Source: Asterias rubens
Taxonomy: Eukaryota
Direction of reading: 5' to 3'
Assembly (NCBI RefSeq): GCF_902459465.1
Contig: NC_047072.1
Span: 17,174,001 to 17,238,000 of the forward strand
DNA length: 64,000 bases
In this document: positions 3,325-34,379 of the stretch, piece after piece
Layout of the letters: each line of letters opens with the position of its first letter
Position numbering within the stretch: position 1 is the stretch's first letter
Notes under the pieces: generated by a model
What the model saw: the letters and a program-made list of their open reading frames with translations, nothing else
Told to the model about the DNA's origin: nothing
Databases searched by the model: none
Made by a program: the position numbers and the translations under genes

Positions 3325-3519
3325 CTGAAATGGAGGTCAGGAAATTGATGATGCGATGATGACGAGCGGTCTGTCTTTATGAAGGTGCAAGTCGGACATG
3401 CGCATTGGTTGTTGGGAGCGCATCGTAATGAGGTCAAGATCAGGTCGTTGACCGTTGACCTTGACGTCATCGATCATGCGCGGTGTCTTGGGGGATAGAT
3501 ACTTCAGTACGTTCATAAT
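3325..3519 (-). CDS. DIO: Deiodinase-like copy A, exon 2 with selenocysteine codon (TGA at 3337-3339)
   Basis: Acceptor ttcttgttttgtcag, IMNVLKYLSPKTPRMIDDVKVNGQRPDLDLITMRSQQPMRMSDLHLHKDRPLVIIASSIS-U-PPFQ, donor CAG|GTAAAA. Matches the DIO RPLVxNFGSxTUPPF active-site motif. Confidence 0.9.
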
Positions 3520-6131: not shown

Positions 6132-6243
6132 TTAAAGGCAGTGGACACTATTTTCACGGGTTTGTTATTTTATGCATATGTTGAGATACACCAACTGTGA
6201 AGACAAGTCTTTGACAATTACCAATAGTGTCCAGTGTCTTTAA
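6132..6243. mobile_element. Family A MITE, internally deleted (both TIRs kept)
   Basis: The left TIR is joined directly to the last ~90 bp of the consensus. Confidence 0.8.
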
Positions 6244-7011
6244 AAAGCGGTTATGAGCATACCTCTTGATCATTCCTATATCTGGCCACAATAGGCATCA
6301 GCATGCCGTGGAATTTACTCCAATCTTTGATGTGTTTATCGAACCCCAGCTCTTCCAGTACCATCCGGTCCGTCTTAACGATGGCGCGCTGAAATAAAAA
6401 TAAAAATCCGTAACAAATAAAACCTACATCGTAAAAAAGAGAGGTAACAAACACTTTTTTGGTAACTTTTTATCATAGTTAACGCCCCCACAAAAAGTGC
6501 GAGGAGGTGCCATGCGGAAATTTTTGCGCATTCGTCCTTCACCCAACCACGTGTGTTTGACGCCTGCAACCCAAAGCAACCGCGTGGAACTCCTTTTGTC
6601 CCATTTGATTATAAACTTGTTGGCAACAGCTCCAACTGGCTTTGCACACGTTCTACTGTGAACCTTTCCCGAACTGTGGATCCTATTGTCATCTTTTGTT
6701 AAAGGCCCCCCCCCCCCGTTTGAATTTGAACATTTTGGTAGTCATTTTGATTGTGCCAATTGGTTTGTGGGAGAATGGTGTAGTCATTTATATAAATTGA
6801 CCCCCGATAAACCCATGTAAACGTTTAAAGGAACATTATGAACTCGAGCAATACGGAATTGGAAATGTTGACACGCTTTTGCTATGGGTTTGAATCAAGA
6901 TAATGTACGGCGTTGGTCATGTTAGAACCCTCTGCTTATTGTATGTTTACGGTCTTTGAATCAGTATAATGTACGGCTATGGTACTGTGGCAAACTTCTG
7001 CTACTGAGTAA

Positions 7012-7290
7012 TACGATAACTTTAGGAACTTCCTCAACAGCCAAAAACAAACTGAGTCAACTATCTATTAATTACCCGCTTGTACAAATTCGGTCTTTAC
7101 ACACAAATGTCTTAACCTAAACTCTAGAAATATAGCATTATTGTGAGTAAAGGCTACGATAACTTTAGGAACTTCCTCAAAACAGCCAAAAACAAACTGA
7201 GTCAACTATCTATTAAACACCCGCTTGGAAATTCGGTCTCTACACACAAATGTCTTAACCTAAACTCAAGAAATATAGCATTCTTGTGAG
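7012..7290 (+). repeat. Two-copy tandem duplication, 143-bp period
   Basis: tacgataactttaggaacttcctca...atatagcatt(a/c)ttgtgag at 7012-7147 and 7155-7290, near identical. Confidence 0.9.
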
Positions 7291-7297
7291 ACATTAC

Positions 7298-7480
7298 CTT
7301 GAGGTTAACCACCAGGCCTGGTTTGGTCGGATCATTAGCCAGAGCGAAGACTTGTTTCCCTTCTTCTCCTTCTAAGACCTCCCGCTGCTTCCTGACGATC
7401 CGGAGGACGACCTCTCGATCGGCTAGAAGCTCCCCGTCTATAACCATCATCGCCTCCCTCGCCGCGTTGCTCATCTGCAT
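7298..7480 (-). CDS. DIO: Deiodinase-like copy A, first coding exon (exon extends to an acceptor at 7531; start ATG at 7480 is inferred)
   Basis: accATG context, MQMSNAAREAMMVIDGELLADREVVLRIVRKQREVLEGEEGKQVFALANDPTKPGLVVNLK, donor AAG|GTAATG in phase 0. Aligns with copy B exon 2. The frame is open a further 17 codons to a tcttaacag acceptor, so an N-terminal extension is possible. Confidence 0.75.
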
Positions 7481-7743
7481 GGTGACAGAGGGCTCCCCCT
7501 CGGTGTTTTGGCCGCTCTCGCCTTCTTTACCCTGTTAAGAGGTGAACTGATGACTTCTCAAACTCTAAATTGGCATTGGACACGTTCGTTTGGCAATTGT
7601 CAAAGACAAGTATTCTCACTTGGTGTATCCCAACATGCATAAGAGAATAATCTGTGCAAATTTTACTCAATTTGTCATTGTATTTGCTCATCTTGATGGT
7701 GGCACCGGGCAGGGGAGGAGTGTTGGCTCTGAAATTAGCTGGT

Positions 7744-7793
7744 TTGGTCTCGACGTTTCGAACAGTAAACGCTAATCGTCTTCAGGAGACCAA
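7744..7793 (-). ncRNA. Minimal type I hammerhead ribozyme (Penelope-like element remnant)
   Basis: Minus strand TTGGTCTC-CTGAAGA-C-GATTAG-CGTTTA-CTGTTC-GAAA-C-GTC-GAGACCAA: 8-bp stem I, CUGANGA and GAAA cores, palindromic ACGU stem III and a GUC cleavage triplet. Confidence 0.7.
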
Positions 7794-7911
7794 CCGGCTC
7801 TTTTCAGAGCCAGCAATACTTCAAAAGATTATTATCACATGGTTGTGTCCGCAAAAGTTTAGACTTCAAACAGAATGTTAAATGAATTGATTATAGAAAA
7901 AAAATCGTATA

Positions 7912-8250
7912 TTAAAGATCTCAGATTTACATACAACTTATACGGTCTATACGATGATGATAACAGCAAGCATCCCTTGAAATATTTTATCTAAAGGGCC
8001 GCAATTATTAGATGAGCAATCAATAAAACTAATTTCCCGTTCGGAGTTTATCGCTCGGTGAGCGTTTTATTCATTTTTGTTTGGAATCGATGTCATGCAA
8101 AAAATGTGTCACCGGTTTTTCACTACTTTCTCGTGACCCATAATTGCCGATCGATCTCAACCTTCTACAGGTTTGTCAGAATGTATATGATGGACTTACA
8201 TAAAGTGCTTACGTTGCCAGTTTTATTAGCACAAAACATTTATGTAATGT
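7912..8250. mobile_element. TTAA-type non-autonomous element, family E
   Basis: Starts ttaaagatctcagatttacatacaacttatacggtc. An inverted homolog lies at about 13380-13720. Confidence 0.55.
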
Positions 8251-8585
8251 TCTGTTTATTATGAAATAACAAGCTTACACGCACATCGTAAAGGGAGAGG
8301 AAAAAACTAGAAAAAAACCTATCATGACAGTAGTGAGTTATATGATTATACAGTTGACACAAAAGTCACAGTGTTCATGTTTTGTGTGATCACCCGCATT
8401 GAAGTGTGTAAACCTCATTGAACAAAGGAAATAGTTTCATCAAAACTTTAACCCACATAGTAAACAACAGTTAAGAAGTATTATGGGTTGGGTTTAGTCA
8501 TTTTTATACGTGTTGGCTTAGTACAACAAATTGTGAGAAATGGCTCCTCTGAAGTCACGTAGTGAGGTAATTTTTCACTTAAGCA

Positions 8586-8969
8586 TTAAAGCCACTGGAC
8601 ACTATTGGTAATTTTCAAAGACTTGCATTCACAGTTGGTGTATCTCAACATAAGCATAAAATAACAAACCTGTGAAAATTTGAGCTCAATCGGTCGTCGA
8701 AGTTGCGAGATAATAATGGAAGAAAAAACACCATTGTCACCCGGAGTGTGTTCTTTCAGATGCTCGATTTCGAGACCTCAAAATTCTAAATCTGAGGTCT
8801 CAAAATCAAATTCGTGGAAAATTACTTCTTTATCGAAAACTACATTACTTCCGAGGTAGCCATTTCTCACGATGTTTTATATTATCAAACTCTCTCAATT
8901 ACTCGTTACCAAGAAAGGTTTTATGCTCAGAATTATGTTGAGTAATTACCAAGTGTCTACTGCCTTTAA
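8586..8969. mobile_element. Family A MITE, full length, opposite orientation
   Basis: Both TIRs with TTAA; partial copies adjoin on both sides (about 8500-8585 and 8975-9180). Confidence 0.85.
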
Positions 8970-9419
8970 AATACATTTTAAGGCATCGGAAAGCGCACAT
9001 TGTGCAATAAGTAACAAGGGTGTCTTTTCTTTATATATTTGGGGGAAACTACGATGGCCAATTGAGTCAAAATTTTCACAGGTTTGTTATTTTATGCATG
9101 CATATGTTGGGATACACCAAGTGAGCAGACTGGTCATTGACAATATTATTACCAAAGGTGCGCTGTGATGCAGTCAGTGCCAATTGAAAAAAAAAACCAT
9201 ATGCATAAAGGAATGATGCACCATTGGACTTTGGTAGAGTAGGCCTACATCCATTCAATTTATGTTTGCAAAAAAATAATATACCAAATAAAGGGATAGA
9301 CCATCAATGGTTTCTGGAACGTTCCAACCTCTCGTTCTAAACTACGATTTGAAACTTTGCATGCAGGTCGGGGTACTCAAGTTAGCTTTGAGGTGACACC
9401 ATGTGTATGAATGTTCTTT

Positions 9420-9510
9420 GAAGTAGTGGTGGTTCTATGAGCAGAACCGGTGGTTTGAAACTCGACGTTTCGAGTAGTGTGCTGTGATTGTCTTCAGAAG
9501 AATGGTAGTT
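9420..9510 (-). mobile_element. Degenerate Penelope-like terminal remnant with a decayed hammerhead
   Basis: Retains CTGAAGA...GAAACGTCGAG on the minus strand, but stems I and II are disrupted. Same motif family as 7744-7793. Confidence 0.45.
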
Positions 9511-9849
9511 CTAAAGACAAATATCGTGAAGGGATGGTCCATACTTTGATTTTGGAAGCATTCAAATCACCCATGTTCGCAAGTAATAATAGTGATGTTA
9601 CATCACAGTCTATAAAAGAGTATATTTTGATTCCACCTCAGAAAAATGTACTTAAGATTTATAGAAATTACCACCTACCGTGTCTGTAGTGTCCGGGTGC
9701 AGACTACTGGTGTGTTGGGAGCTCGTTTCTCGTTCTATTTGTGGACTCACTCAACGTCTTAATCAGCCATTTCAATCGAAGAAGACAAGCTCTCACTCTC
9801 AGAGACAAAAACCCTCAAACTGACTCCGTCGAAGTCAAGACGCTTCTTT

Positions 9850-9905
9850 TTATTGGATAGGCTGACGTCTCATTTGCATATTCCTGGCAGGGTTTGCACC
9901 AATGA
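9850..9905. promoter_or_regulatory. Possible promoter cluster upstream of copy A
   Basis: ATTGG (9852), TGACGT (9863), octamer ATTTGCAT (9872-9879) and CCAAT (9899) within 55 bp; a minus-strand donor ACG|GTAGGT near 9678 could close a non-coding first exon. Motif evidence only. Confidence 0.3.
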
Positions 9906-12900
9906 GATGGAGTAAGAAAACTTGCTGTTTTGCATAAAGAGGCAGGCTCTCTCGTAAAACACCTTATAGTTTGTCTGCGCAGAGCGGTGCTTCATGCCTG
10001 GCGTTCGAGACGAAAGACCGGTATGAAGTGACATCCAGCGCACGTGTCAACGTGTGTGGGAGTTACATTAACCGTGCGTACCTGCACGGAGCTTCGCTGG
10101 GAGCAATAACCAAGAATCACCGATTTTTTTTCTTTCTGTGTGATATTTGCTAGATTAAGCAAATATTTACTGTCATTGACACAGGCCACACTTCATTTAT
10201 TATTACAGATACAGCTCTGTAAGGTGGCGATGATATGCCATGACTAAACGATATTTCGACCCGGAAGTTTGTGTTAAAAATTGTAACATCAGTAAGGCCT
10301 ATATGTAGGAAATCTTTAAACTTTTCAAATACAATTCAAGACATAATTATATATTTGGTTTGCGGTAACACCATGTGTGTATCTACTTGCCAGGTAGAGT
10401 TTGTTCTTAGAGATTTGTCTTGCATTTATTCTATACTGCCGCGGAGTAGATGTTCGGGGGTTCGGGAGACTTCTCAGTTCTGAAAAGAACTGTCCTGCTT
10501 TTAACTATTATAGACAATTCAAGACAGTTCACATTTATTTTTCCATACTGTCAATCTTCTCTTTTGCCGTCCTCTCTTTCTCTTGCTTGTCATAGGCTGC
10601 CATTTTGTCACTCTTCTAGTACACCTGTTGTCTTGGACCCCTGACACATGGCCTGCACACTAAAGATTGAAGCATTTTGAAAATTTACACATAATTTGGT
10701 TAATTTTATCCCGTATTGTAAAATGTACTATCTCTCTACACGGCTCTCTGTGTTGTTCTCAGTTTGTTGTTGAACTCACTTGTTATAGTCCAAGAATGGC
10801 CAAACTTAATAATGTTAAAGTTTCTTCCCAAGTTCATAGGTTGATAAGATGTTCGACCATCTTGAGCTATTGTTCCAAGCACCGATTGGAAGGAAGCTGT
10901 CCCTTTCCCACGCACTTTTAAGGCACTTTGGTAAATTAGATGAATCCTTAGTGTAGAACAAGTCAGAAACAAGGTTTGTTTTTAGAAACTAGTTTCTAAT
11001 TTTATGACTTCTAGGACGAATTTTCCCAAGATCAATTTTGATTCAACATTCACAAACTTAATTCGAACAGAACCATCCCCTTTAAAATAATTCGAGTTAT
11101 TCGATCGAAATATTAATCATGGCAGTCATATTGACAAAATTGTGATGACAAATAAATTGGAAACACTATGACAAGTCTATTGTACGACCCCTACCACACT
11201 ACGTGATAACCCATACAAGGGAAACCCCCCTTCACTGTACTACGATTAATTGTTATAATGGTTTACCTTGGCGAACAGGGCTTCCCAGCACCATTCCCAG
11301 CCTTAAATGAACATAACAGAATAGGTTTCTGCTTACAAAACAGTTGCTTTTGTAAGCAATCATGTAATCCACTACATACACAAACTGACAAACCTCAGCT
11401 GAGGTCTCGAATTCAATTCAAGTTTTGAGTGGAAAGTTACTTCTTTCTCAAAAACTACGCTACTTCAGAGGGAGCCGTCCCTCACAATGTTTTATACTAT
11501 CAACAGCTCTGCATTGCTCGTTATCAAGTAAGTTTTTATGCTAACAATTTTTTTACTAGTAATTATCAATAGTGTCCAGTGACTATAAAGGAGGATACCG
11601 TAAACCTTTGTTTTGAACAAAAAGTGACCTTAAACAGTCTAGAGCCTTTATGGCAGGCAAGATACTTCAATTGTGTGAAGGATTCCGGTTGTAAAAGTGT
11701 ACAAGCTTTTGTTCCCTTTCATTATAGAAAGTTGAATAAAAACAAGACACTCTACATATAAAGTGTATGATGTTTTCTTCTATTGAGCTGTGTACAACTC
11801 GTGCTTGCAGGAAGAAGTTCTGCCTCTATCTGTGGCTCTTTTGTGAACTGTGAAACATAACTCGCAGAAATGATGGTCCGGATTTGAACCCACTCGAGGC
11901 CTATTTTGCGTAATTGGTGCGAAACGAGAACGGCACGCACTCGACCATAATCTGAAAAAAATTGTATTGTTGTCTGCCAAAAGTTGAGAAGGGGCAAGGA
12001 TCATTTTTTGTTACGAGTGGATGGACCTGCACGTCACCAAGGAATAAAGTAAACAGTGGACCAAACTTTTTACGAGCTGTTTTTGTTTTCGTGGGTTTCT
12101 TCCATGTGCACTTTTGGCAAAACGTTGAGAGAATAAACATGCACCACTGTGATGGGCTCGCTTGTGAGCGCACTCACCCCTATGTATATGAATAGATGGG
12201 CTGCTCCAGTTGAGATTCAACTAATGTTGTTGTGAACTGTTGTGCACATAAGTTTATTTAGCACAGCAGGACACATTGACAATACTTCATACTGTATCAG
12301 CAACACTTGCTGAAAAAATGGATTTTTTTTTATCATAATAAAAAAATGTATGTTTCATTGGAAAACGAAGGTTTCTTTTTGCCAAACAAATACTTCGGTG
12401 ACAGCTCTTTATCGATAGACCTCATTAGCCAGGAGCTCCAGAACATGCAAAAGCAGTTTTACAAATACCGTACAATTTGCACTAAGGTACTAAAAGTTTT
12501 GAGCAGAAACAATGATTTGCTCTCCTGAAGATGAGCAGAGTATAACGTTGAGACCACACTGCCCTTTTTACAGAGCCAGCACTCCCCCTAAAGAGAAAAT
12601 TACATTGCACCCGCAAGTTTGGTTTCCCATTCATGAGTTGAAGCAATATATGTGGGGGGAAAATGTGCTCTTTTCAAAGGGAATTGATACCTTTTTTATA
12701 TCACGTTTTGGGCCTTACTTTCACTTTCAGCTTCATTATTAGTCGTCAAGTTTTTGAAGAAAAAAAACCATGAAAATCACAGAGCAATGTTTTCAGGAGA
12801 GTCGCGTAAATCCGTGTTGTACTTAATAAAATAATAGTGTCTCATTGATTATTTTCGTGAAATCGTTTTTTTTCAATTTCCCCAAAACTACAGCAATTCA

Positions 12901-23585: not shown

Positions 23586-24758
23586 AACAAGAAACCGCTC
23601 CCTCTGAAGTACGTAGTTATAGACCTCAGCTTAAACCACACAACTTGTGCGACAATGGTGTTTTTTCTTCCATTATTCTCTCGCAACTTCGACGACCAAA
23701 TTGAGCTCAAATTTTCACAGGTTTGTTATTAATTTATAAATGATTATAAGGATAATAACAATGGCACTGGACATTGTTGGTAATTACTCAGAAAATTTTT
23801 TAGCATACAACCTTACTTGGTATTACGAGCAATGGGGAGTTGTATTAACAGATATCAGCTTTTTTGTTTTCAAACATTTTAATCTTAGAAGCGTATTTAT
23901 CTCAAAGCACAGTACGTTTGTGCCAATAGGGTGTTTTTTCTTTCATTATTTTCTTGCAACTTCGATGACCGTTTGAGGCAAAATTTTCACAGGTTTGTCA
24001 TTTTCTGCATATGTTGGTTTGCAACAAGAGCGAATACTGCTCGTTGACAATTACCAAAGATTGACGCACTGCCATTAGCTTTTTAGTATTCATTTAACCC
24101 AAGGTTTTGTGTGGGCCACGAGTGGGTGTACACTTTGAGCTTGTAATTGTTGTTGTAGATGTGTTTGGCTATGGGGGAAACCCCTTCATTATGTCATGAC
24201 CTACCAAAGTGAACACAGTATTTGTTCATGGAGCACTTTGCCATCAGTGTAATGCTAATTTAATTGTGGATGTTGTGGTCTAACATAGTGAGCTACAGGC
24301 TGACTGACGTTACTACGCCTTAGAGCTCACCTATCGTGGGCGCAAATTCTTGGAAACGATATTTTTTTGTTAATATATGTTTTTGAATTTATTTAATCCC
24401 TTCAGTTTAAATAAATTGTTTTGAAATTTGTCCTCCGGGTAGGCGTTCGCAACTATAGAAATTAAGAGACACTGTAAACAGCAAGGGTTTCCGAAATGCG
24501 TAAATACTCTATTCACAACAACTCACATTTTGTCATGTGCCCGGGCATTAAGCCAAAATTGAAGGCTTTATACGCCTTTTTTTAGTCACACAAATTTGTT
24601 TTAGCAAGCCGTATAGGTAATAATGTATGGCATTATTGTTGCATTGTTGGTCACCCCAACGACGTTTTTTTCTTCACATTTCAATATGCAGAACTAAACT
24701 TCCTTTACAATTATTTTGTAATGGCGGAAAGCCGATCAAACTTACCCGATCAGTTTTC

Positions 24759-25148
24759 TTAAAGACACTGGACACTGTTGGTAATTGTCAAAGACCAGTC
24801 TTCTTACTTGATGTGTCTCAACATAATATGCATAAAATAACGAACCTGTGAACATTTGAGCTCAATTGGTCATTGAAGTAGCGGGATAATAATGAAAGAA
24901 AAAACACCCTTGTCACACGAAGTTGTATGCGTTTAGATGGTTGATTTCGAGACCTCAAGTTCTAAATCTGAGCTCTCGAAATCAACTTCGTGGAAAATTA
25001 CTTCTTTCTCGAAAACTATGGCACTTCAGAGGGAGCCGTTTCTCACAAAGTTTTGTACTATCAACCTTTCCCCATTATTCGTCACCAAGTAAGGTTTTAT
25101 GCCAATAATTATTTTCGGTAATTACCAATAGTGTCCACTGCCTTTTAA
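24759..25148. mobile_element. Family A MITE, full length, opposite orientation
   Basis: Both TIRs with TTAA. Confidence 0.85.
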
Positions 25149-26369
25149 AGCACAATTTGGACGTATACGTCGCTCTCCCCCAAAACATCGCTCTGTGATT
25201 TTCATTTTATTCCCACTCAAAAGCTTAATGACTAATGAAGCTAAAACTTTAACATTCAATTCATGACATGGCCAAAAAACCTTGATCTACAAAATTTATC
25301 ACAACCCTTTAACACAGAGTCGATACTGACGCAACAAAAAGGCTTGGATCCAACACCTGCCTCATGCTCCCATCTGCTTCTCGCCTCGTTCTACTCACGG
25401 CTGCCACGCCCCAATTAGAGTAAACAATAGCGACTATAGACCTGCGGGGCGTTATGCACACATTAATGTCAATGATCAACCTGCTTCGCTACATTCCAAC
25501 CCCCTCACACCCAAGATGTAGCCGTTTATAGACACCCATCATCTATCTGACCTATATTGACAATCAACGTCTTAGCTCGCCTCATCTCACCCGCATCCGT
25601 CCCGAAATCAAGGAGGAGGTCTTGCGAGATGCTGACGTCATCGTCTTCGAAGGTCTACGTCATTGTGGTTGGGATAAGGCTTCCAGGGGGTCCTAAGTTA
25701 TGAAGGAGACAGAATATCCTGGAGCATCCTCTACTGCTTCATCAACTGGAGAGGATGGCATTCAAATTCACTGTGACGTCAGAAATGTGGGTTAAAGGCA
25801 GTGGACACTTTTGGTAATGACTCAAAATAATTTTTAGCATAAAAGCTTACTTGGTAGCGAGTAATAGGGAGCTGTGAATAGTATAAAACATTGTGAGAAA
25901 CGGCTTCCTGTGAAGTAACTTAAAAATAACATTTTTTACCTGTCCTTGATAGACATTATCAAACAAATTAATAGTGATAAGTTCATGCCTATCTATGGTG
26001 TGCTTTTATACTTAAGAGACAGCGGCATTGATTGTTATTGAATACGGCAGGCTTTAAACTTCCTCTTGAAGGGGCATAGTAATGTCCCTCTTGTGTCAGG
26101 GGTACTTCTACGTGGGGAAATGTAAATTTGTATGGAACCTTGCAACGGGCACCTTAAAGCACGGGGCACCACGGCAATTGCTGCTCGTGTCGTGGGTGAT
26201 TTCGAGCCCTAATACGGCAGTAATCAGAATCAAGAGAAAACACTCCTTTGCGAAACCCGTCTGACGTTTGGAGATAAATTTCGAAAACAAGCCGAGGGAT
26301 TTCCCCGCGCAAAAATTGCAACAAAGCTTTGTTGGAAAATTTCTGAGAAATGTGTTTCCCGATTTGGCT

Positions 26370-26756
26370 TTAAAGGCAGTGGACACTATTGGTAATTACT
26401 CAAAATAATTGTTATCATAAAACGTTTCTTGGTGGCGAATAATGGGGAGAGGTTGATGGTATAAAACATTGTGAGAAACGGCTCCCTCTGAAGTGCCATA
26501 GTTTTCGAGAAAGAAGTAATTTTCCACGAATTTTATTTCGAGACCTCAGATTTAGAACTTGAGGTCTCGAAATCAACCATCTAAACGCATACAACTTCGT
26601 GTGACAAGGGTGTTTTTTTCTTTCATTATTATCTCGCAACTTCGATGACCGATTGAGCTCAAATTTTCACAGGTTAGTTATTTTATGCATATGTTGAGAT
26701 ACACCAACTGTGAAGGCTAGTCTTTGACAATAACCAATAGTGTCCACTGCCTTTAA
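26370..26756. mobile_element. Family A MITE, full length
   Basis: Both TIRs with TTAA; close to consensus. Confidence 0.88.
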
Positions 26757-27103
26757 ATACAATTAGGTCTCGCTTCCTTTTCTTTTGTTGAATGTTATAA
26801 TAGTCCGTACCCTAAAGCGATTTATATGTGACGTCTTGATAGACCATTTCACCTCGACGGAACAATTGCAAAAATGTTCAATGGACTTTTATTGCTTAAA
26901 AATGTTGACTGCATTTTTGAGGGTTTTTTTGACAAAAGAGTGTGGGGACAAGGGGGACTTGTGAAATGAAAGAACTAGTGTTAACAGTTTGATGTGGTTG
27001 TGCTTTATGAATGGCTAAATAATTATGTGGATGTGTCGTAAAACAACCCAGTTAGTCTGCAACCCTAAATTGTGTTGAAAGATTATTACCATAGCGGGGC
27101 ATA

Positions 27104-27581
27104 TTAAAGGCAGTGGACACTATTGGTTATTGTTAAAGACTAGCATTCACAGTTGGTGTATCTCAACTTAGATTACCAATAGTGTCCAGTGTATTTAAAG
27201 ACAGCGGACACTATTGGTAATAATTATTGTCAGTCTTCTCACTTGGTGTATCTCATCATATACATAAAATAACAAACCTGTGAAAATTTGAGCTCAATCG
27301 GTTATCGAAGTTGCGAGATAATAATAAAAGAAAAAACGCCCTTGTCACACGAAGTTGTGTGCGTTATAGATGGTTGATTTCGAGACCTCAAGTTCTAAAC
27401 TTGAGGTCTCGAAATCAAATTCGTGGAAAATTACTTCTTTCTCGAAAACTATGGACACTTCAGAGGGAGCCGTTTCTCACAATGTTTTATACCATCAACC
27501 TCTCCCCATTACTCGTCACCAAGAAAGGTTTTATGCTAATAATTATTTTGAGTAATTACCAATAGTGTCCACTGCCTTTAA
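27104..27581. mobile_element. Family A mini-copy (27104-27198) fused through a shared TTAA to a full copy (27195-27581)
   Basis: TIR pairs on both units; junction gtatTTAAagacagcggacac. Confidence 0.8.
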
Positions 27582-28154
27582 ATGGTGCTCTAGATATTAC
27601 ACAAAAGGAGAAGATAGTGGAATAAGTTCGCTGTCTGTATACAGGGATGAACATTTTCACACAAAAATGCTAAATGTATCTGATAAAAGTCTGCTTTTGT
27701 TAAAAAAATAAATAAATAAAAAATATACATGGATGAGAAGTTTGACCCCACGTTTTTCAGAAATTTGGCTTGGAGCGTTCTGGAGAAAAACCCATTTTTA
27801 CCATGTTTTATCGTGAGGTAAGAGAGTCGTAATATATTTTAATGTTTCCTATGGACTGCAGCTGTTAGAAAACTGTCATATCTATATATTTGAGATCATC
27901 CTTTATTGGCTGTTTAAACTTTGTGAAGGACTGACAGAAGGCGCGGCACACGGACATTAAAATGTGGTGCACGGGTGAACTTGTAAGGTGTGTGTAAACA
28001 CAGTTTTAAGAAAAGCAAATAAACAGGGAGCTATGAAATAGGTCGGGTCGTTATTACATGAACAATAAATATATCCGGAAGGCCGTGAAAAATGAATTGC
28101 ACCAAAGTTAATGTCTTGGTAGATAAGGGGAGCAGAACTAGGCCGGGTCGTGCT

Positions 28155-28292
28155 NNNNNNNNNNNNNNNNNNNNNNNNNNNNNNNNNNNNNNNNNNNNNN
28201 NNNNNNNNNNNNNNNNNNNNNNNNNNNNNNNNNNNNNNNNNNNNNNNNNNNNNNNNNNNNNNNNNNNNNNNNNNNNNNNNNNNNNNNNNNNN
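28155..28292. other. Assembly gap (138 N); a family A MITE resumes on the right (28293 to about 28650)
   Basis: Run of N directly visible. Confidence 0.99.
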
Positions 28293-29039
28293 GTGGACAC
28301 TATTGGTAATTACTCAAAATGATTATTATCATAAAACCTTTCTTGACTACGAGTAATGGGGAGAGGTTGATAGTATAAAACATTGTGAGAAACAGCTCCC
28401 TCTGAAGTGACATAGTTTTCGAGAAAGAAGTATTTTTCCACGAATTTGAGGTCTCAAAATCAAGCATCTGAAAGCACACAACTTTGTGTGACAAGGGTGC
28501 TTTTTCTTTCATTAATATCTCACAACTTCGAAGACCAACTGAGCTCAAATTTTCACAGGTTTGTTATTTTATTCATTGAGATACACCAACTGTGAAGACT
28601 AGTCTTGTGAAGACTAGTCTTTGACTTACCAATAGTATTCAGAGTCTTTAGCGTCTTACACTAATGCCTGGTCTATATTCATAAATAATAAAGCCCTTAA
28701 AATGTGTTCTTGACTGTTTGAAGATTTTGAAATACAAAAAATAGAAACATTAAAAAATGAATTTATAACTTTTTCCCCTCAGCCAATTTAGACTACATCA
28801 TTTACCTTCAACGCCCGTGAGTCTAGCATAGGATAGCCTACTCATACTAAAGTACTAGTAAAACTATAACGTTAGGCCTAGGCCTACCGTTAGGGCCATA
28901 CGTTAACGTTAGTTTTCTTTAAACAACCCACCATCGATTTGCATCAGTCGGAATTCTCCTCCGGATCCATCATCGTACGGGACAGCTTTCACTTAGTCTT
29001 ACTAAGCCGTCAACGTGAATACAGTAATTACACACTCAA

Positions 29040-29204
29040 GTCGTGAAAAAATCGCGACTAGTCGTGAAAAATTTCGTGACGTCGCCAAAATATTCGCGAC
29101 TTGGCGCGAATAAATTCACGACGTCGCAAAAATATTCACGACGTTGCAAAAATATTCGTGACTTGTCGTAAATAAATTCACGACGTCGCAAAAATATTCA
29201 TGAC
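29040..29204. repeat. Degenerate ~20-21 bp minisatellite
   Basis: Repeated units such as tcacgacgtcgcaaaaatatt and tcgtgacttgtcgtaaataaat. Confidence 0.75.
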
Positions 29205-30105
29205 TGGCTGTGTCCCTTCAGGATCGTGTTGCCAAAAAAAAACCATGTAGGAACCAGACGATTTTGCTTATAGCTCGTTAGGGTTAATTTGCTAATTGAC
29301 TGATCACCAGACAGTGGGAATAATCAAGGACTATTGGTAGTAACTTATTGCATTACTTACACGTGCTTCATATTATGAGTGCTCTGCCAAGGTGAATTGG
29401 TTCTATAGCTAATGAGTCAAGTCATAAAGGAAATTTAAAGTATTATACCCAATTAAACAGACATTTTAAAGCGATGTTTATTTTTTACCATGGCAACTTA
29501 ATGTATTGTTAATTCGAAAAAAACTCATAGAGTTGGGGTTGACTATGCCTCAGAGGGACTGGCAACACAACATTTGAAGCATTAGTGAGAAAATGACCGT
29601 CTTGAGTAGTTTGATTTTTCTCTTGCTTGAGATGTTTCTTAAGGTTTCAGCATCTGATAATGTTGTTAATGGTGTTTACCGATGGGTCTGGTACCAGCCG
29701 GTACAGCACCAGACCCTACTACAAACAAACAATCGAACAAACAAGGTATGAAATTCCGTTTTATTTCTTCGTTAATTTCCCAACCATAAATATTAGTTGT
29801 GTCTCAAAATAATAGTTTTAAAAGGAAGTTGTATAACATTAAATACAGAAAAGTAAAATATCAAACAGAATGGGCGCTCCCCTTGAAAGGACAACATTTA
29901 CCAAAGAGTCATCATGGGTTATTCTAGGGGTTTAATAATTATGCAACTTCCATTTAGTCATTTGTTTTAAACACATTATTAGTGGATTGATTTTGAAAAT
30001 GCTAGCATCCCATGTATTTTGATAAACCAGTGAATTATATTTCAGAATTTGTTGAAACAGTTTAATATTGGTTATAAACCGCCAAAACGCACCCCAGCAT
30101 TCAAT

Positions 30106-30256
30106 GTGGGACTTTTGCGAGGCTAGGCGGAAGCAGTTGACTTACCAGGTAAATCCATTGTTTTCGTTAATGTGTGCATAAAAAATCTGCTCGGGACTAC
30201 GTAAAAAATGGTATACCTTATAAGTATGCTGCCACCAAGAGTTCTAAAGTCTCCCA
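30106..30256. mobile_element. Short MITE in the copy B 3' region; a relative lies at 40553-40698
   Basis: tggga(ga)ctttt...aaagtctccca termini and a shared body (gacttaccaggtaaatccattgtt). Confidence 0.6.
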
Positions 30257-30360
30257 ATAAGTTTCGCCAATATATAACCAATTGTTTTTTTATAGGTCAC
30301 TGTAATAAAGAAAAAATTAAAAAAAATAACAAAAATCTGCTTTAACTTTTTTTTAAACAC

Positions 30361-30619
30361 TTATTCCTGACTGAATCGCTTCTCTAACCACACCTTGACC
30401 TCATCCGTCATGAGCTTATCCGGTTTCTTCAACTGTTGTCTGACTTCCTTACACATGAACGCCACTCTACCACTCTCAACGACGATGATACGGTCTGGGT
30501 GCGCGTCGTATTGCAGGGCGAATTTGTTGTCCATGGTGTCCAGCACCAGTCTAAGTTTGTCCTGGCTGTGTGTGTCGTCAGTGAAGGTGTTGTGATTAGA
30601 GTCTCTTGCCATCATTTCT
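30361..30619 (-). CDS. DIO: Deiodinase-like selenoprotein copy B, last coding exon (exon 5)
   Basis: Acceptor ttttgacag (phase 2), (R)EMMARDSNHNTFTDDTHSQDKLRLVLDTMDNKFALQYDAHPDRIIVVESGRVAFMCKEVRQQLKKPDKLMTDEVKVWLEKRFSQE*. DIO VLDTMDN and YxAxPDR motifs. Confidence 0.9.
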
Positions 30620-30853: not shown

Positions 30854-31026
30854 CGAGCGACGTCTATTCTATCTTGAATTGTTTTGTGCTGGTCCATAAA
30901 GCTGAACTCGTCGCTGAAGACCCAGCGCCCTCTTGGGTGAGCCTCTGCCAGGTAGACGCAGAGGAAATCGGCCCGGTCCTTGTAGTCTTTGAACAATGCG
31001 TTCAAAGTGCCACCAAGAACTATGGC
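30854..31026 (-). CDS. DIO: Deiodinase-like copy B, exon 4
   Basis: Acceptor ccag, AIVLGGTLNALFKDYKDRADFLCVYLAEAHPRGRWVFSDEFSFMDQHKTIQDRIDVA, donor CG|GTAAG. Same phases (0/2) as copy A exon 3. Confidence 0.9.
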
Positions 31027-31831: not shown

Positions 31832-32023
31832 CTGAAACGGGGGTCAGGAGAGTGAAGACGCCACCAACACGAGAGGGCGCTCTTTATGAGTGTGTAAGCT
31901 CATGATTGGCACGACGTCATTACCCAAGGTGACCACACCCACATCTTCGGCTGCACTGCCAATTTCAAAATTTAATCCCATTTGTTTGATGAAGACCACA
32001 AACTTAGTGACCTCTGCCATGAC
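31832..32023 (-). CDS. DIO: Deiodinase-like copy B, exon 3 with selenocysteine codon (TGA at 31844-31846)
   Basis: Acceptor tttatgtttcag, VMAEVTKFVVFIKQMGLNFEIGSAAEDVGVVTLGNDVVPIMSLHTHKERPLVLVASSLS-U-PPFQ, donor CAG|GTAAG at the same position as in copy A. Confidence 0.9.
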
Positions 32024-33266
32024 CTGAAACATAAACCGATAATGGTTATTATAACTAGTCCTTCAAAATAACTCGTTCTTATAAATTGACCTGTTTATAG
32101 ACCTACTTCAAAAAGGTCATAATTACGTCCTTCGCATTTGTGTTTCTTATGCTCTTTACATCGTACTCACAATGATATCCTAAGTTGGACTATTCCATAC
32201 ATCCTATGAGGGGTGTCAATCAACAGGTACCAGTGATTTGTGTTAGAAAAGGGCACAATAATACTCAGCCCGCGTCCTTTGTGTACAAAATCGGAATCGG
32301 AGGTAGTTGATTCGAGTCTAGACTAGACCCAAAGACAGGTCCCTGCCGCCAGATCCAGTGATTCCATTGGATACAATGATATCATTTAATAAACGTGACA
32401 AGATATAGATGCCCAAACAGTCACTGCTGTCATGTATGCAATAGAATTTGACTGCGTATCTCTATGTGAAATGAAAGTTGGTCAAAGGTGAATATACACG
32501 TCGGTATCGAGGCAGGTCTCTGGCGTTATTCACGAGCCTCGAAGTGTGACGTCAGTAGGTTCAGGCTAGTTCGAGTCCCGCTTTAGTCAATTTTTCTTGA
32601 TTTTCATCATCTTACCTCGGGATCAAATCGCCAATTTACGAAGAGGGTGTCCAATATTCCAGCGAATTTGTTCCAGTCACTGATTGCCGGGCCCAGACCA
32701 AGTTCCTCTATCGCTAGTCGCTCGGTCTGTTTCCTAACTTTCTAAAAAAAAAAAAAAAAAAATTAAACAATTACTACGATGCAAATATTTTCGTTAATAG
32801 TATGTCAACACAACTTTTTTTTTTTCTAAATCCAACTTTCCTCTATCACTTATCACTCAGTCTGTTTCCTTACTTTCAACAAACAAACAATTTTTTTTTT
32901 CCCTTTTGTTTAGGCAAATAAATCAACGATATCTGGCAACAAAAGTTTTATTTTCTTCATCCAAGTATATGTCCGTCCTCGTTTGCTTGGCCCTAAGCAC
33001 AATTGCATAGACCTGTATTAAGCAAAACAAAATTCTGCTGAGCAGAATAAGGTTACCTGCCAAAATAACGATCTGTGATCCAAACAAACAACCCCCATTT
33101 AATTTTTTTTTTTCAAAAACCCATCAACGACCAAACGCCCCAACAAACAAATAAACTGCATCTCAATAACAACAACTGTTCGTTGTGAGTTTTTATTCTT
33201 TAGTGTTTTGTTGGTACTTTCAGACGACTCAAACTTCACAGAGAAATCAAATAAGTCAAATTATAC

Positions 33267-33428
33267 CTCAAAGTCGACCAGTGCCTTTGGTTGCCGGGGA
33301 TCGAATCCATCTTCGAACAACTGTTTTGTTGATTCCCGTCCAGTGATCTCTACCCACTTTCTGAAGATGGCCAGGGCGCCCTCTTTGTCGTTGAAAAGCT
33401 CTACACCTTGTGCGTCTGGCGGAAAAAC
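33267..33428 (-). CDS. DIO: Deiodinase-like copy B, exon 2
   Basis: Acceptor ggttttgtag, VFPPDAQGVELFNDKEGALAIFRKWVEITGRESTKQLFEDGFDPRQPKALVDFE, donor GAG|GTATAA, phase 0/0. Colinear similarity to the first exon of copy A. Confidence 0.8.
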
Positions 33429-34322: not shown

Positions 34323-34379
34323 CATATCTTCATTCTTTACTCTCCCCTGGTCTCCGGAGCCTGGCCCCGTACCCGCCAT
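34323..34379 (-). CDS. DIO: Deiodinase-like copy B, putative first coding exon
   Basis: gcagcATGG start context, MAGTGPGSGDQGRVKNEDM, strong donor ATG|GTAAGT in phase 0 matching exon 2. No homology support, so less certain than the other exons. Confidence 0.6.

Follow-up and report, generated by a model that had tools for sequence, protein, structure and literature searches.

Two tandem genes on the minus strand of the window (the whole stretch of DNA analyzed, 64,000 nucleotides of the Asterias rubens genome) encode selenocysteine (Sec)-containing proteins of the deiodinase family, of 313 (copy A) and 322 (copy B) amino acids, and we consider it likely that the pre-catalytic part of both is a six-helix domain belonging to enzymes that, from their sequences, would be soluble. 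In this reading, the segment flagged at 7298-7531 in copy A would be the first half of a compact domain of ∼110 residues, which would form the entire pre-catalytic part of the two enzymes and stand directly before the first catalytic beta strands, in the place taken in vertebrate deiodinases by a membrane helix, hinge, and linker.

Gene structure and transcript support

The coding sequences were assembled by frame inspection, reading of splice sites, and alignment of the two copies with each other. The 5′ end of copy A comes from RNA contigs (small assemblies from four runs of four studies, with exons matched perfectly), compared with positions 6200-12199, and that of copy B from one RefSeq gene model. 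Both peptides quoted in the initial annotation are exact minus-strand translations of the DNA: in copy A, the minus strand of 7298-7534 reads ...QGKEGESGQNTEGEPSVTMQMSNAAREAMMVIDGELLADREVVLRIVRKQREVLEGEEGKQVFALANDPTKPGLVVNLK and then meets a GTAATG donor, where the peptide ...DGELLADREVVLRIVRKQREVLEGEEGKQVFALANDPTKPGLVVNLK terminates at 7298; in copy B, the peptide ...GVELFNDKEGALAIFRKWVEITGRESTKQLFEDGFDPRQPKALVDFE lies on the minus strand at 33267-33428, which translates as VFPPDAQGVELFNDKEGALAIFRKWVEITGRESTKQLFEDGFDPRQPKALVDFE and is flanked by an AG acceptor and a GT donor. The gapless alignment claimed between them was reproduced, with 17 identities in 44 positions and a BLASTP E-value of 3e-8 (for the single comparison of two exon translations). 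A profile built from the two segments additionally found the same segment in other echinoderm proteins among 1.84 billion searched (E 1e-13 to 1e-4). Because of this E-value and these profile matches, the likeness of the two segments is, at the level of sequence, one of true homology and not of chance.

In copy A, a non-coding first exon at 9678-10016 (5′ UTR, minus strand as are all exons below) was identified from spliced RNA contigs, which at its 5′ side reach 10009-10016. Single minus-strand contigs of three runs (X1, X2, and X8) link 9678-10016 to 7530-7298. The second exon, which carries the flagged segment, is covered at 7298-7530/7532 by contigs of four runs that splice to 6388. The location given earlier for this exon is thus right, but its limits are not: the contigs place it at 7298-7530, of which only 7298-7480 is coding. 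Within the coding frame, the first exon is interrupted by a TAA/TAG and five TGA codons and lacks a productive ATG; the in-frame upstream ATGs stop after 7-9 codons. Because this exon is closed in frame and its ATGs end early, translation of copy A must start at the ATG at 7480-7478 (context ACCATGC), which opens MQMSNAAREAMMVIDGELL... in the translation and is contained in the RNA contigs; the conserved segment starts at residue 17. The first exon holds five upstream ATGs in all, of which two share the main frame (MQMRRQPIQ-stop), making up short upstream open reading frames.

By homology with copy B, the second exon of copy A covers helices 1-3 and runs into helix 4. A third exon at 6263-6388 (RAIVKTDRMVLEELGFDKHIKDWSKFHGMLMPIVARYRNDQE), encoding the middle of the putative helical domain, has AG/GT borders and is reached by contigs of X2, X6, and X8 that run on from 7298 to 6388-6263; it is homologous to residues 74-115 of the copy B RefSeq model (P0017). 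The fourth exon (3325-3519) encodes the end of the N-terminal region, the first catalytic beta strands, and the active site SIS-U-PPF, with the Sec codon TGA at 3337-3339 in the context DRPLVIIASSIS-U-PPF. The catalytic domain continues in exon 5 (2452-2621; PF00837 positions 125-174, E 5.6e-9; placed by its junctions) and exon 6 (1792-1900, placed by its junctions and by alignment to copy B), and the coding sequence ends with exon 7 and its stop codon (1112-1270), behind an intron that is extra relative to copy B. Homologue searches turned up no RefSeq model for copy A.

Copy B begins with a short coding exon at 34323-34379 (MAGTGPGSGDQGRVKNEDM, 19 hydrophilic residues, GTAAGT donor) taken from the RefSeq model; in the genomic sequence, its ATG has an in-frame stop 8 codons ahead of it. 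This exon had been missed in the initial annotation, which had correctly found the segment at 33267-33428 and had taken it for the N-terminus; it is exon 2 of the RefSeq model, encoding residues 20-73, which in the AlphaFold2 prediction comprise helices 1-3 plus the beginning of helix 4. One intervening exon per gene (6263-6388 and 32616-32741) was also absent from the earlier exon set. In copy B, this third exon (32616-32741) encodes residues 74-115, the middle of the predicted domain, as given by the RefSeq model and its splice borders. The fourth (31832-32023) encodes the last helix of the domain, the first catalytic beta strands, and the active site SLS-U-PPF, with the Sec codon TGA at 31844-31846 in the context ERPLVLVASSLS-U-PPF, and it is followed by two catalytic-domain exons, 30854-31026 (PF00837 positions 126-174, E 1.1e-10) and 30361-30619, the latter with the stop codon (PF00837 positions 182-236, E 1.6e-7; placed by its junction). 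The first 174 residues of the copy B splice product are identical to the RefSeq “uncharacterized protein LOC117296255” (P0017). The single last coding exon of copy B (30361-30619) is split in copy A (1792-1900 and 1112-1270) by the extra intron, and the remaining intron positions and phases are common to both genes.

Several repeats lie around these exons. Two direct copies of a ∼140-nt unit, 95-96% identical and spaced at 143-145 nt, occupy 7036-7290 in the intron that immediately adjoins the donor site of the flagged exon, and another, diverged repeat pair is found at 6889-7002. Short repeats of very high copy number with perfect hairpins (TTGATTTCGAGACCTCAA...) occur at 8600-9200, 10200-10600, 11400-11600, and 6200-6260, as well as at 921-970, 24940-24988, 26530-26577, and 27373-27421. 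They yield spurious mir-3036-like Rfam matches and, in each of the four runs, a huge contig depth when summed, and are probably MITE-like elements in introns.

Catalytic domain and selenocysteine insertion

The exons downstream of the Sec codons match the deiodinase family PF00837 over model positions 125-236, with scores of 36.1, 41.7, and 31.3 bits against a curated cut-off of 27, and the catalytic part also matches the solved structures of mouse Dio3 (4TR3, E 7.7e-7, by exon 5 of copy B) and Dio2 (9H48). In both copies, an in-frame TGA is found within RPLV(I/L)(I/V)ASS(I/L)S-U-PPF, and the frame carries on into the PF00837-positive exons. Judged by the catalytic domain and the Sec site, copies A and B are members of the deiodinase family, and we infer from this membership that both enzymes carry out Sec-dependent reductive dehalogenation in the manner of other deiodinases. 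The residue two positions before Sec is serine in both (SIS-U-PPF in A and SLS-U-PPF in B); DIO1 and DIO3 have a cysteine there.

When the 418-Mb assembly was searched with PF00837, matches at the E-value cut-off of 0.001 came solely from these two genes; on this profile evidence, the Asterias genome appears to contain no other genes of the deiodinase family. One further weak signal, at C6:18744203-18744295 on the minus strand (E 1.95, 15 bits, positions 104-134, the active-site region), could be a chance match or a very diverged or decayed copy.

The SECIS element is a hairpin in the 3′ UTR that directs the insertion of Sec. A candidate for copy A lies at 281-347 on the minus strand, ∼770 nt 3′ of the stop codon, and has an AUGA/AAA/GA core; it scores 24.6 bits with Rfam SECIS_1 (E 0.041 in 1.2 kb), short of the gathering score of 35, and at the gathering threshold Rfam gave no match in the whole window. 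For copy B, no SECIS was found in 24500-30400, an interval that contains a gap of Ns (28155-28292) in which one might sit.

The helical domain and the membrane anchor

In copy B, the domain spans residues ∼20-130 and three exons: the flagged exon encodes about half of it, and the remainder is supplied by the middle exon and the start of the Sec exon. The initial annotation had suggested a folded helical module of ∼47 residues; its helical character was borne out by prediction, and its extent had to be enlarged to ∼110 residues. In an AlphaFold2 model of the first 174 residues (from an alignment of 11 sequences), residues 20-127 are helical with pLDDT values of 84-95, and the domain modeled alone (residues 20-133, 7 sequences) gives a pLDDT of 87.5 and a pTM of 0.80, with helices at 9-12, 15-29, 32-41, 49-67, 83-91, and 95-110. 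These alignments are shallow (7-11 sequences), and the model nonetheless predicts a helical fold with confidence. A homodimer prediction for the N-terminal 135 residues scored 0.13, against a mark of 0.32. Because the domain runs up to the N-terminal beta strands of the catalytic part, it would take the place held in vertebrate enzymes by the membrane helix, hinge, and linker.

The domain has been conserved among both sea stars and brittle stars. Matches to the segment profile among the 1.84 billion proteins include Acanthaster XP_022081822, two tandem genes of Patiria, three genes of Amphiura, and unnamed short fragments. The RefSeq homologues each open with a short hydrophilic stretch that is followed by the segment, and the longer models among them exposed the middle exon, with the motif DR..(M/I)EELGL...I.DW.KF.GIL. 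Copies A and B share 33% identity in the domain and 47% in the catalytic part, and copy A does not conserve the last helix. A wider, alignment-based homologue search returned echinoderm proteins only.

The statement in the initial annotation that the module was not recognizable agrees with our searches, which gave no convincing match in the PDB, the AlphaFold database, or the ESM Atlas. Pfam searches with single exons and with the pre-Sec halves had no match for the N-terminal region, and neither did a sequence search of solved structures with the copy B RefSeq model (P0017). Against the PDB, Foldseek found nothing below E 2 for the 174-residue model and nothing below E 2.1 for the domain alone, and the best VIA-align Z-scores against 48,161 chains were 5.5 and 5.4, respectively, where values below about 8-13 are noise for helical bundles according to the tool's own note. 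TM-scores in the ESM Atlas were at most 0.29 (174-residue model) and 0.40 (domain alone), and a feature search of the same resource gave no usable match. Among the AlphaFold database clusters, one unnamed 179-residue entry matches the whole 174-residue model (E 1.4e-6, 24% identity) and is evidently a further, more distant homologue.

The helical region might alternatively be a diverged form of the vertebrate hinge and linker, with echinoderms having lost only the membrane helix from an ancestral anchor and linker, and the linker having grown. Its position is identical to that of the linker, stopping just ahead of the catalytic N-terminal beta strands, and vertebrate models have one or two small linker helices packed on the core (PMC11592359), but six helices in ∼110 residues are far more than a vertebrate linker comprises. 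PF00837, whose positions 1-124 represent the vertebrate anchor and linker, gave no match, at E-values up to 10, with the segment exons or with the entire pre-Sec halves of the homologues P0003, P0006, and P0014, and no deiodinase is present among the best 30 Foldseek matches in the Swiss-Prot AlphaFold models. These results are in line with the earlier proposal that the segment differs from the ordinary deiodinase linker. Because Pfam also missed the pre-Sec beta strands and so is insensitive in this region, its silence over the helices is weak evidence against a distant linker homology. Taken together, we regard descent from the vertebrate-type linker as unlikely, and retain the reading of a distinct helical domain.

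The lack of a hydrophobic stretch at both N-termini, another claim of the initial annotation, was confirmed: over the first 130-140 residues of either copy, a 19-residue Kyte-Doolittle window reaches a maximum of 1.0. In six echinoderm homologues, no membrane helix was found before the catalytic domain (maxima of 0.75-1.26), and the sole window above 1.6 (1.65-1.67) is the buried strand-turn of the active site around Sec. The sequences of copies A and B have no signal-like N-terminus, no Met-Gly start for myristoylation, and no C-terminal CaaX box. Because signal, anchor, and lipidation motifs are all lacking, both enzymes are probably soluble and cytosolic. They could instead associate with membranes by another route (for example lipidation, an amphipathic helix, or binding of the helical domain to a partner in the membrane), given that the characterized vertebrate deiodinases all act at membranes (PMC8143656) and that hydrophobicity in the N-terminal half is highest in the last helix of copy B (VMAEVTKFVVFIKQMG). 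That stretch, however, scores just 1.0-1.26 and is not retained in copy A, which reads SPKTP there, and with the lipidation motifs missing as well, we judge this route to be quite improbable.

Protein C10 (C12orf57, PF14974) was considered as an identity for the domain, which would then be a diverged C10 fused to a deiodinase core. Both are small, all-helical, and of similar size, and C10 is the weak top structural match: the fish, frog, mouse, human, and cow proteins occupy the top rows of the Foldseek search against Swiss-Prot models, with the whole C10 protein aligned, TM-scores by hit of 0.52-0.59, and probabilities up to 0.85, and C10 fragments are also present in the AlphaFold database cluster search. 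These structural matches are not significant (E 0.45-1.8), however, with an rmsd of 7-9 Å, and the domain has no sequence or profile similarity to C10. In the genome, PF14974 matches only the true C10 gene, on another chromosome (C20:340324-341056); hhalign between 7 module sequences and 17 C10 proteins gives a probability of 0.4% (E 0.16); and pairwise alignments fall in inconsistent registers that are not significant by shuffling. The identity was rejected at the sequence level on these three grounds, and a C10 origin seems very improbable.

The initial annotation had also raised an upstream exon encoding a transmembrane helix. Upstream exons do exist, non-coding in copy A and encoding 19 hydrophilic residues in copy B, but neither exon encodes a membrane helix. 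That a membrane-helix exon still further upstream was missed by annotation is hardly credible and for copy A largely refuted already: the contig 5′ ends of copy A (10009-10016) are not necessarily the transcript start, and the start of copy B depends on a single gene model, but the TAA/TAG and five TGA codons in frame in the first exon of copy A bar read-through from an upstream ATG, an in-frame stop lies above the copy B ATG in the genomic sequence, and a hydrophobic stretch is likewise missing from the start of six independent gene models of three other species.

Comparison with known deiodinases

The biochemically characterized deiodinases are all integral membrane dimers, no full-length structure is available, and the role of the N-terminal region in dimerization and activity is debated (PMC11592359). 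Those of vertebrates are homodimers with an N-terminal membrane helix (PMC8143656). Their stable dimers need the membrane/linker region, membrane attachment as such being dispensable, and in Dio2 it is the linker, not membrane attachment, that supports stable dimers (PMC11592359). The starfish Sec deiodinases, complete, apparently soluble by nature, and with an N-terminal domain predicted to be folded, would offer an experimental handle on this debate. Speculatively, and with the balance of probability against it, the helical domain may do the job of the anchor and linker by stabilizing the active dimer or by packing on the core near the substrate site. It is possible, but doubtful as a complete account, that the domain is an undescribed, so far echinoderm-only family that makes a full-length Sec deiodinase soluble and replaces the membrane/linker region as dimer holder or substrate gate. 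If so, membrane anchoring of deiodinases would be a lineage-specific solution and not an ancestral requirement, and structural work would gain, in the starfish proteins, its first tractable full-length deiodinases.

Sea urchin deiodinases are known as T4-induced transcripts (PMC10250714), and T4 affects the development of sea stars (PMC11304627). Because the Asterias genome apparently has no deiodinase-family genes other than copies A and B, these two would have to carry whatever thyroid-hormone metabolism is due to enzymes of this family in the sea star.

Relatives of the two proteins with RefSeq records are the orthologues or paralogues XP_022081822 (Acanthaster), LOC119744591/2 (Patiria), and XP_072019445 and XP_072018631 (Amphiura), which have the same domain and the same ...ASSLS end; LOC117296255 (Asterias) is copy B itself. 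The echinoderm RefSeq models (P0017, P0006, P0015, P0016, P0003, P0014, and P0018) end at the Sec UGA, with ...ASS(L/I)S. Because these models stop there, the records lack the deiodinase domain, and the proteins are labeled “uncharacterized” instead of being given a family name. Orthologues in four echinoderm RefSeq annotations, cut in this way, would be missed by surveys that go by family name. The literature searched describes neither a conserved, folded domain at the N-terminus of any deiodinase nor the architecture of echinoderm deiodinases.

Similar to DIO1, DIO2, and DIO3 (PF00837), copies A and B have a thioredoxin-fold catalytic domain with the deiodinase-specific region (..DFLCVYLAEAHP..), a UGA-encoded Sec in x-S-x-S-U-P-P-F with RPLV ahead of it, and a similar length before Sec (174 residues in copy B). 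They differ in having no membrane helix, hinge, or recognizable linker, and instead a predicted six-helix domain of ∼110 residues. The absence of the anchor outside vertebrates is not new, because it has already been reported for non-vertebrate chordates, whose deiodinases are shorter and “apparently do not possess TM, H, and L domains” (PMC8699336). The proteins of the ascidian Halocynthia and of amphioxus resemble the starfish copies in this respect, being reported as apparently without membrane, hinge, and linker domains (PMC8699336). As a data point on the evolution of family architecture outside vertebrates, the starfish copies nevertheless stand apart: compared by description, the ascidian and amphioxus proteins are shorter or N-terminally missing, whereas the starfish N-terminus is complete, RNA-supported, and occupied by a conserved domain with a predicted fold.
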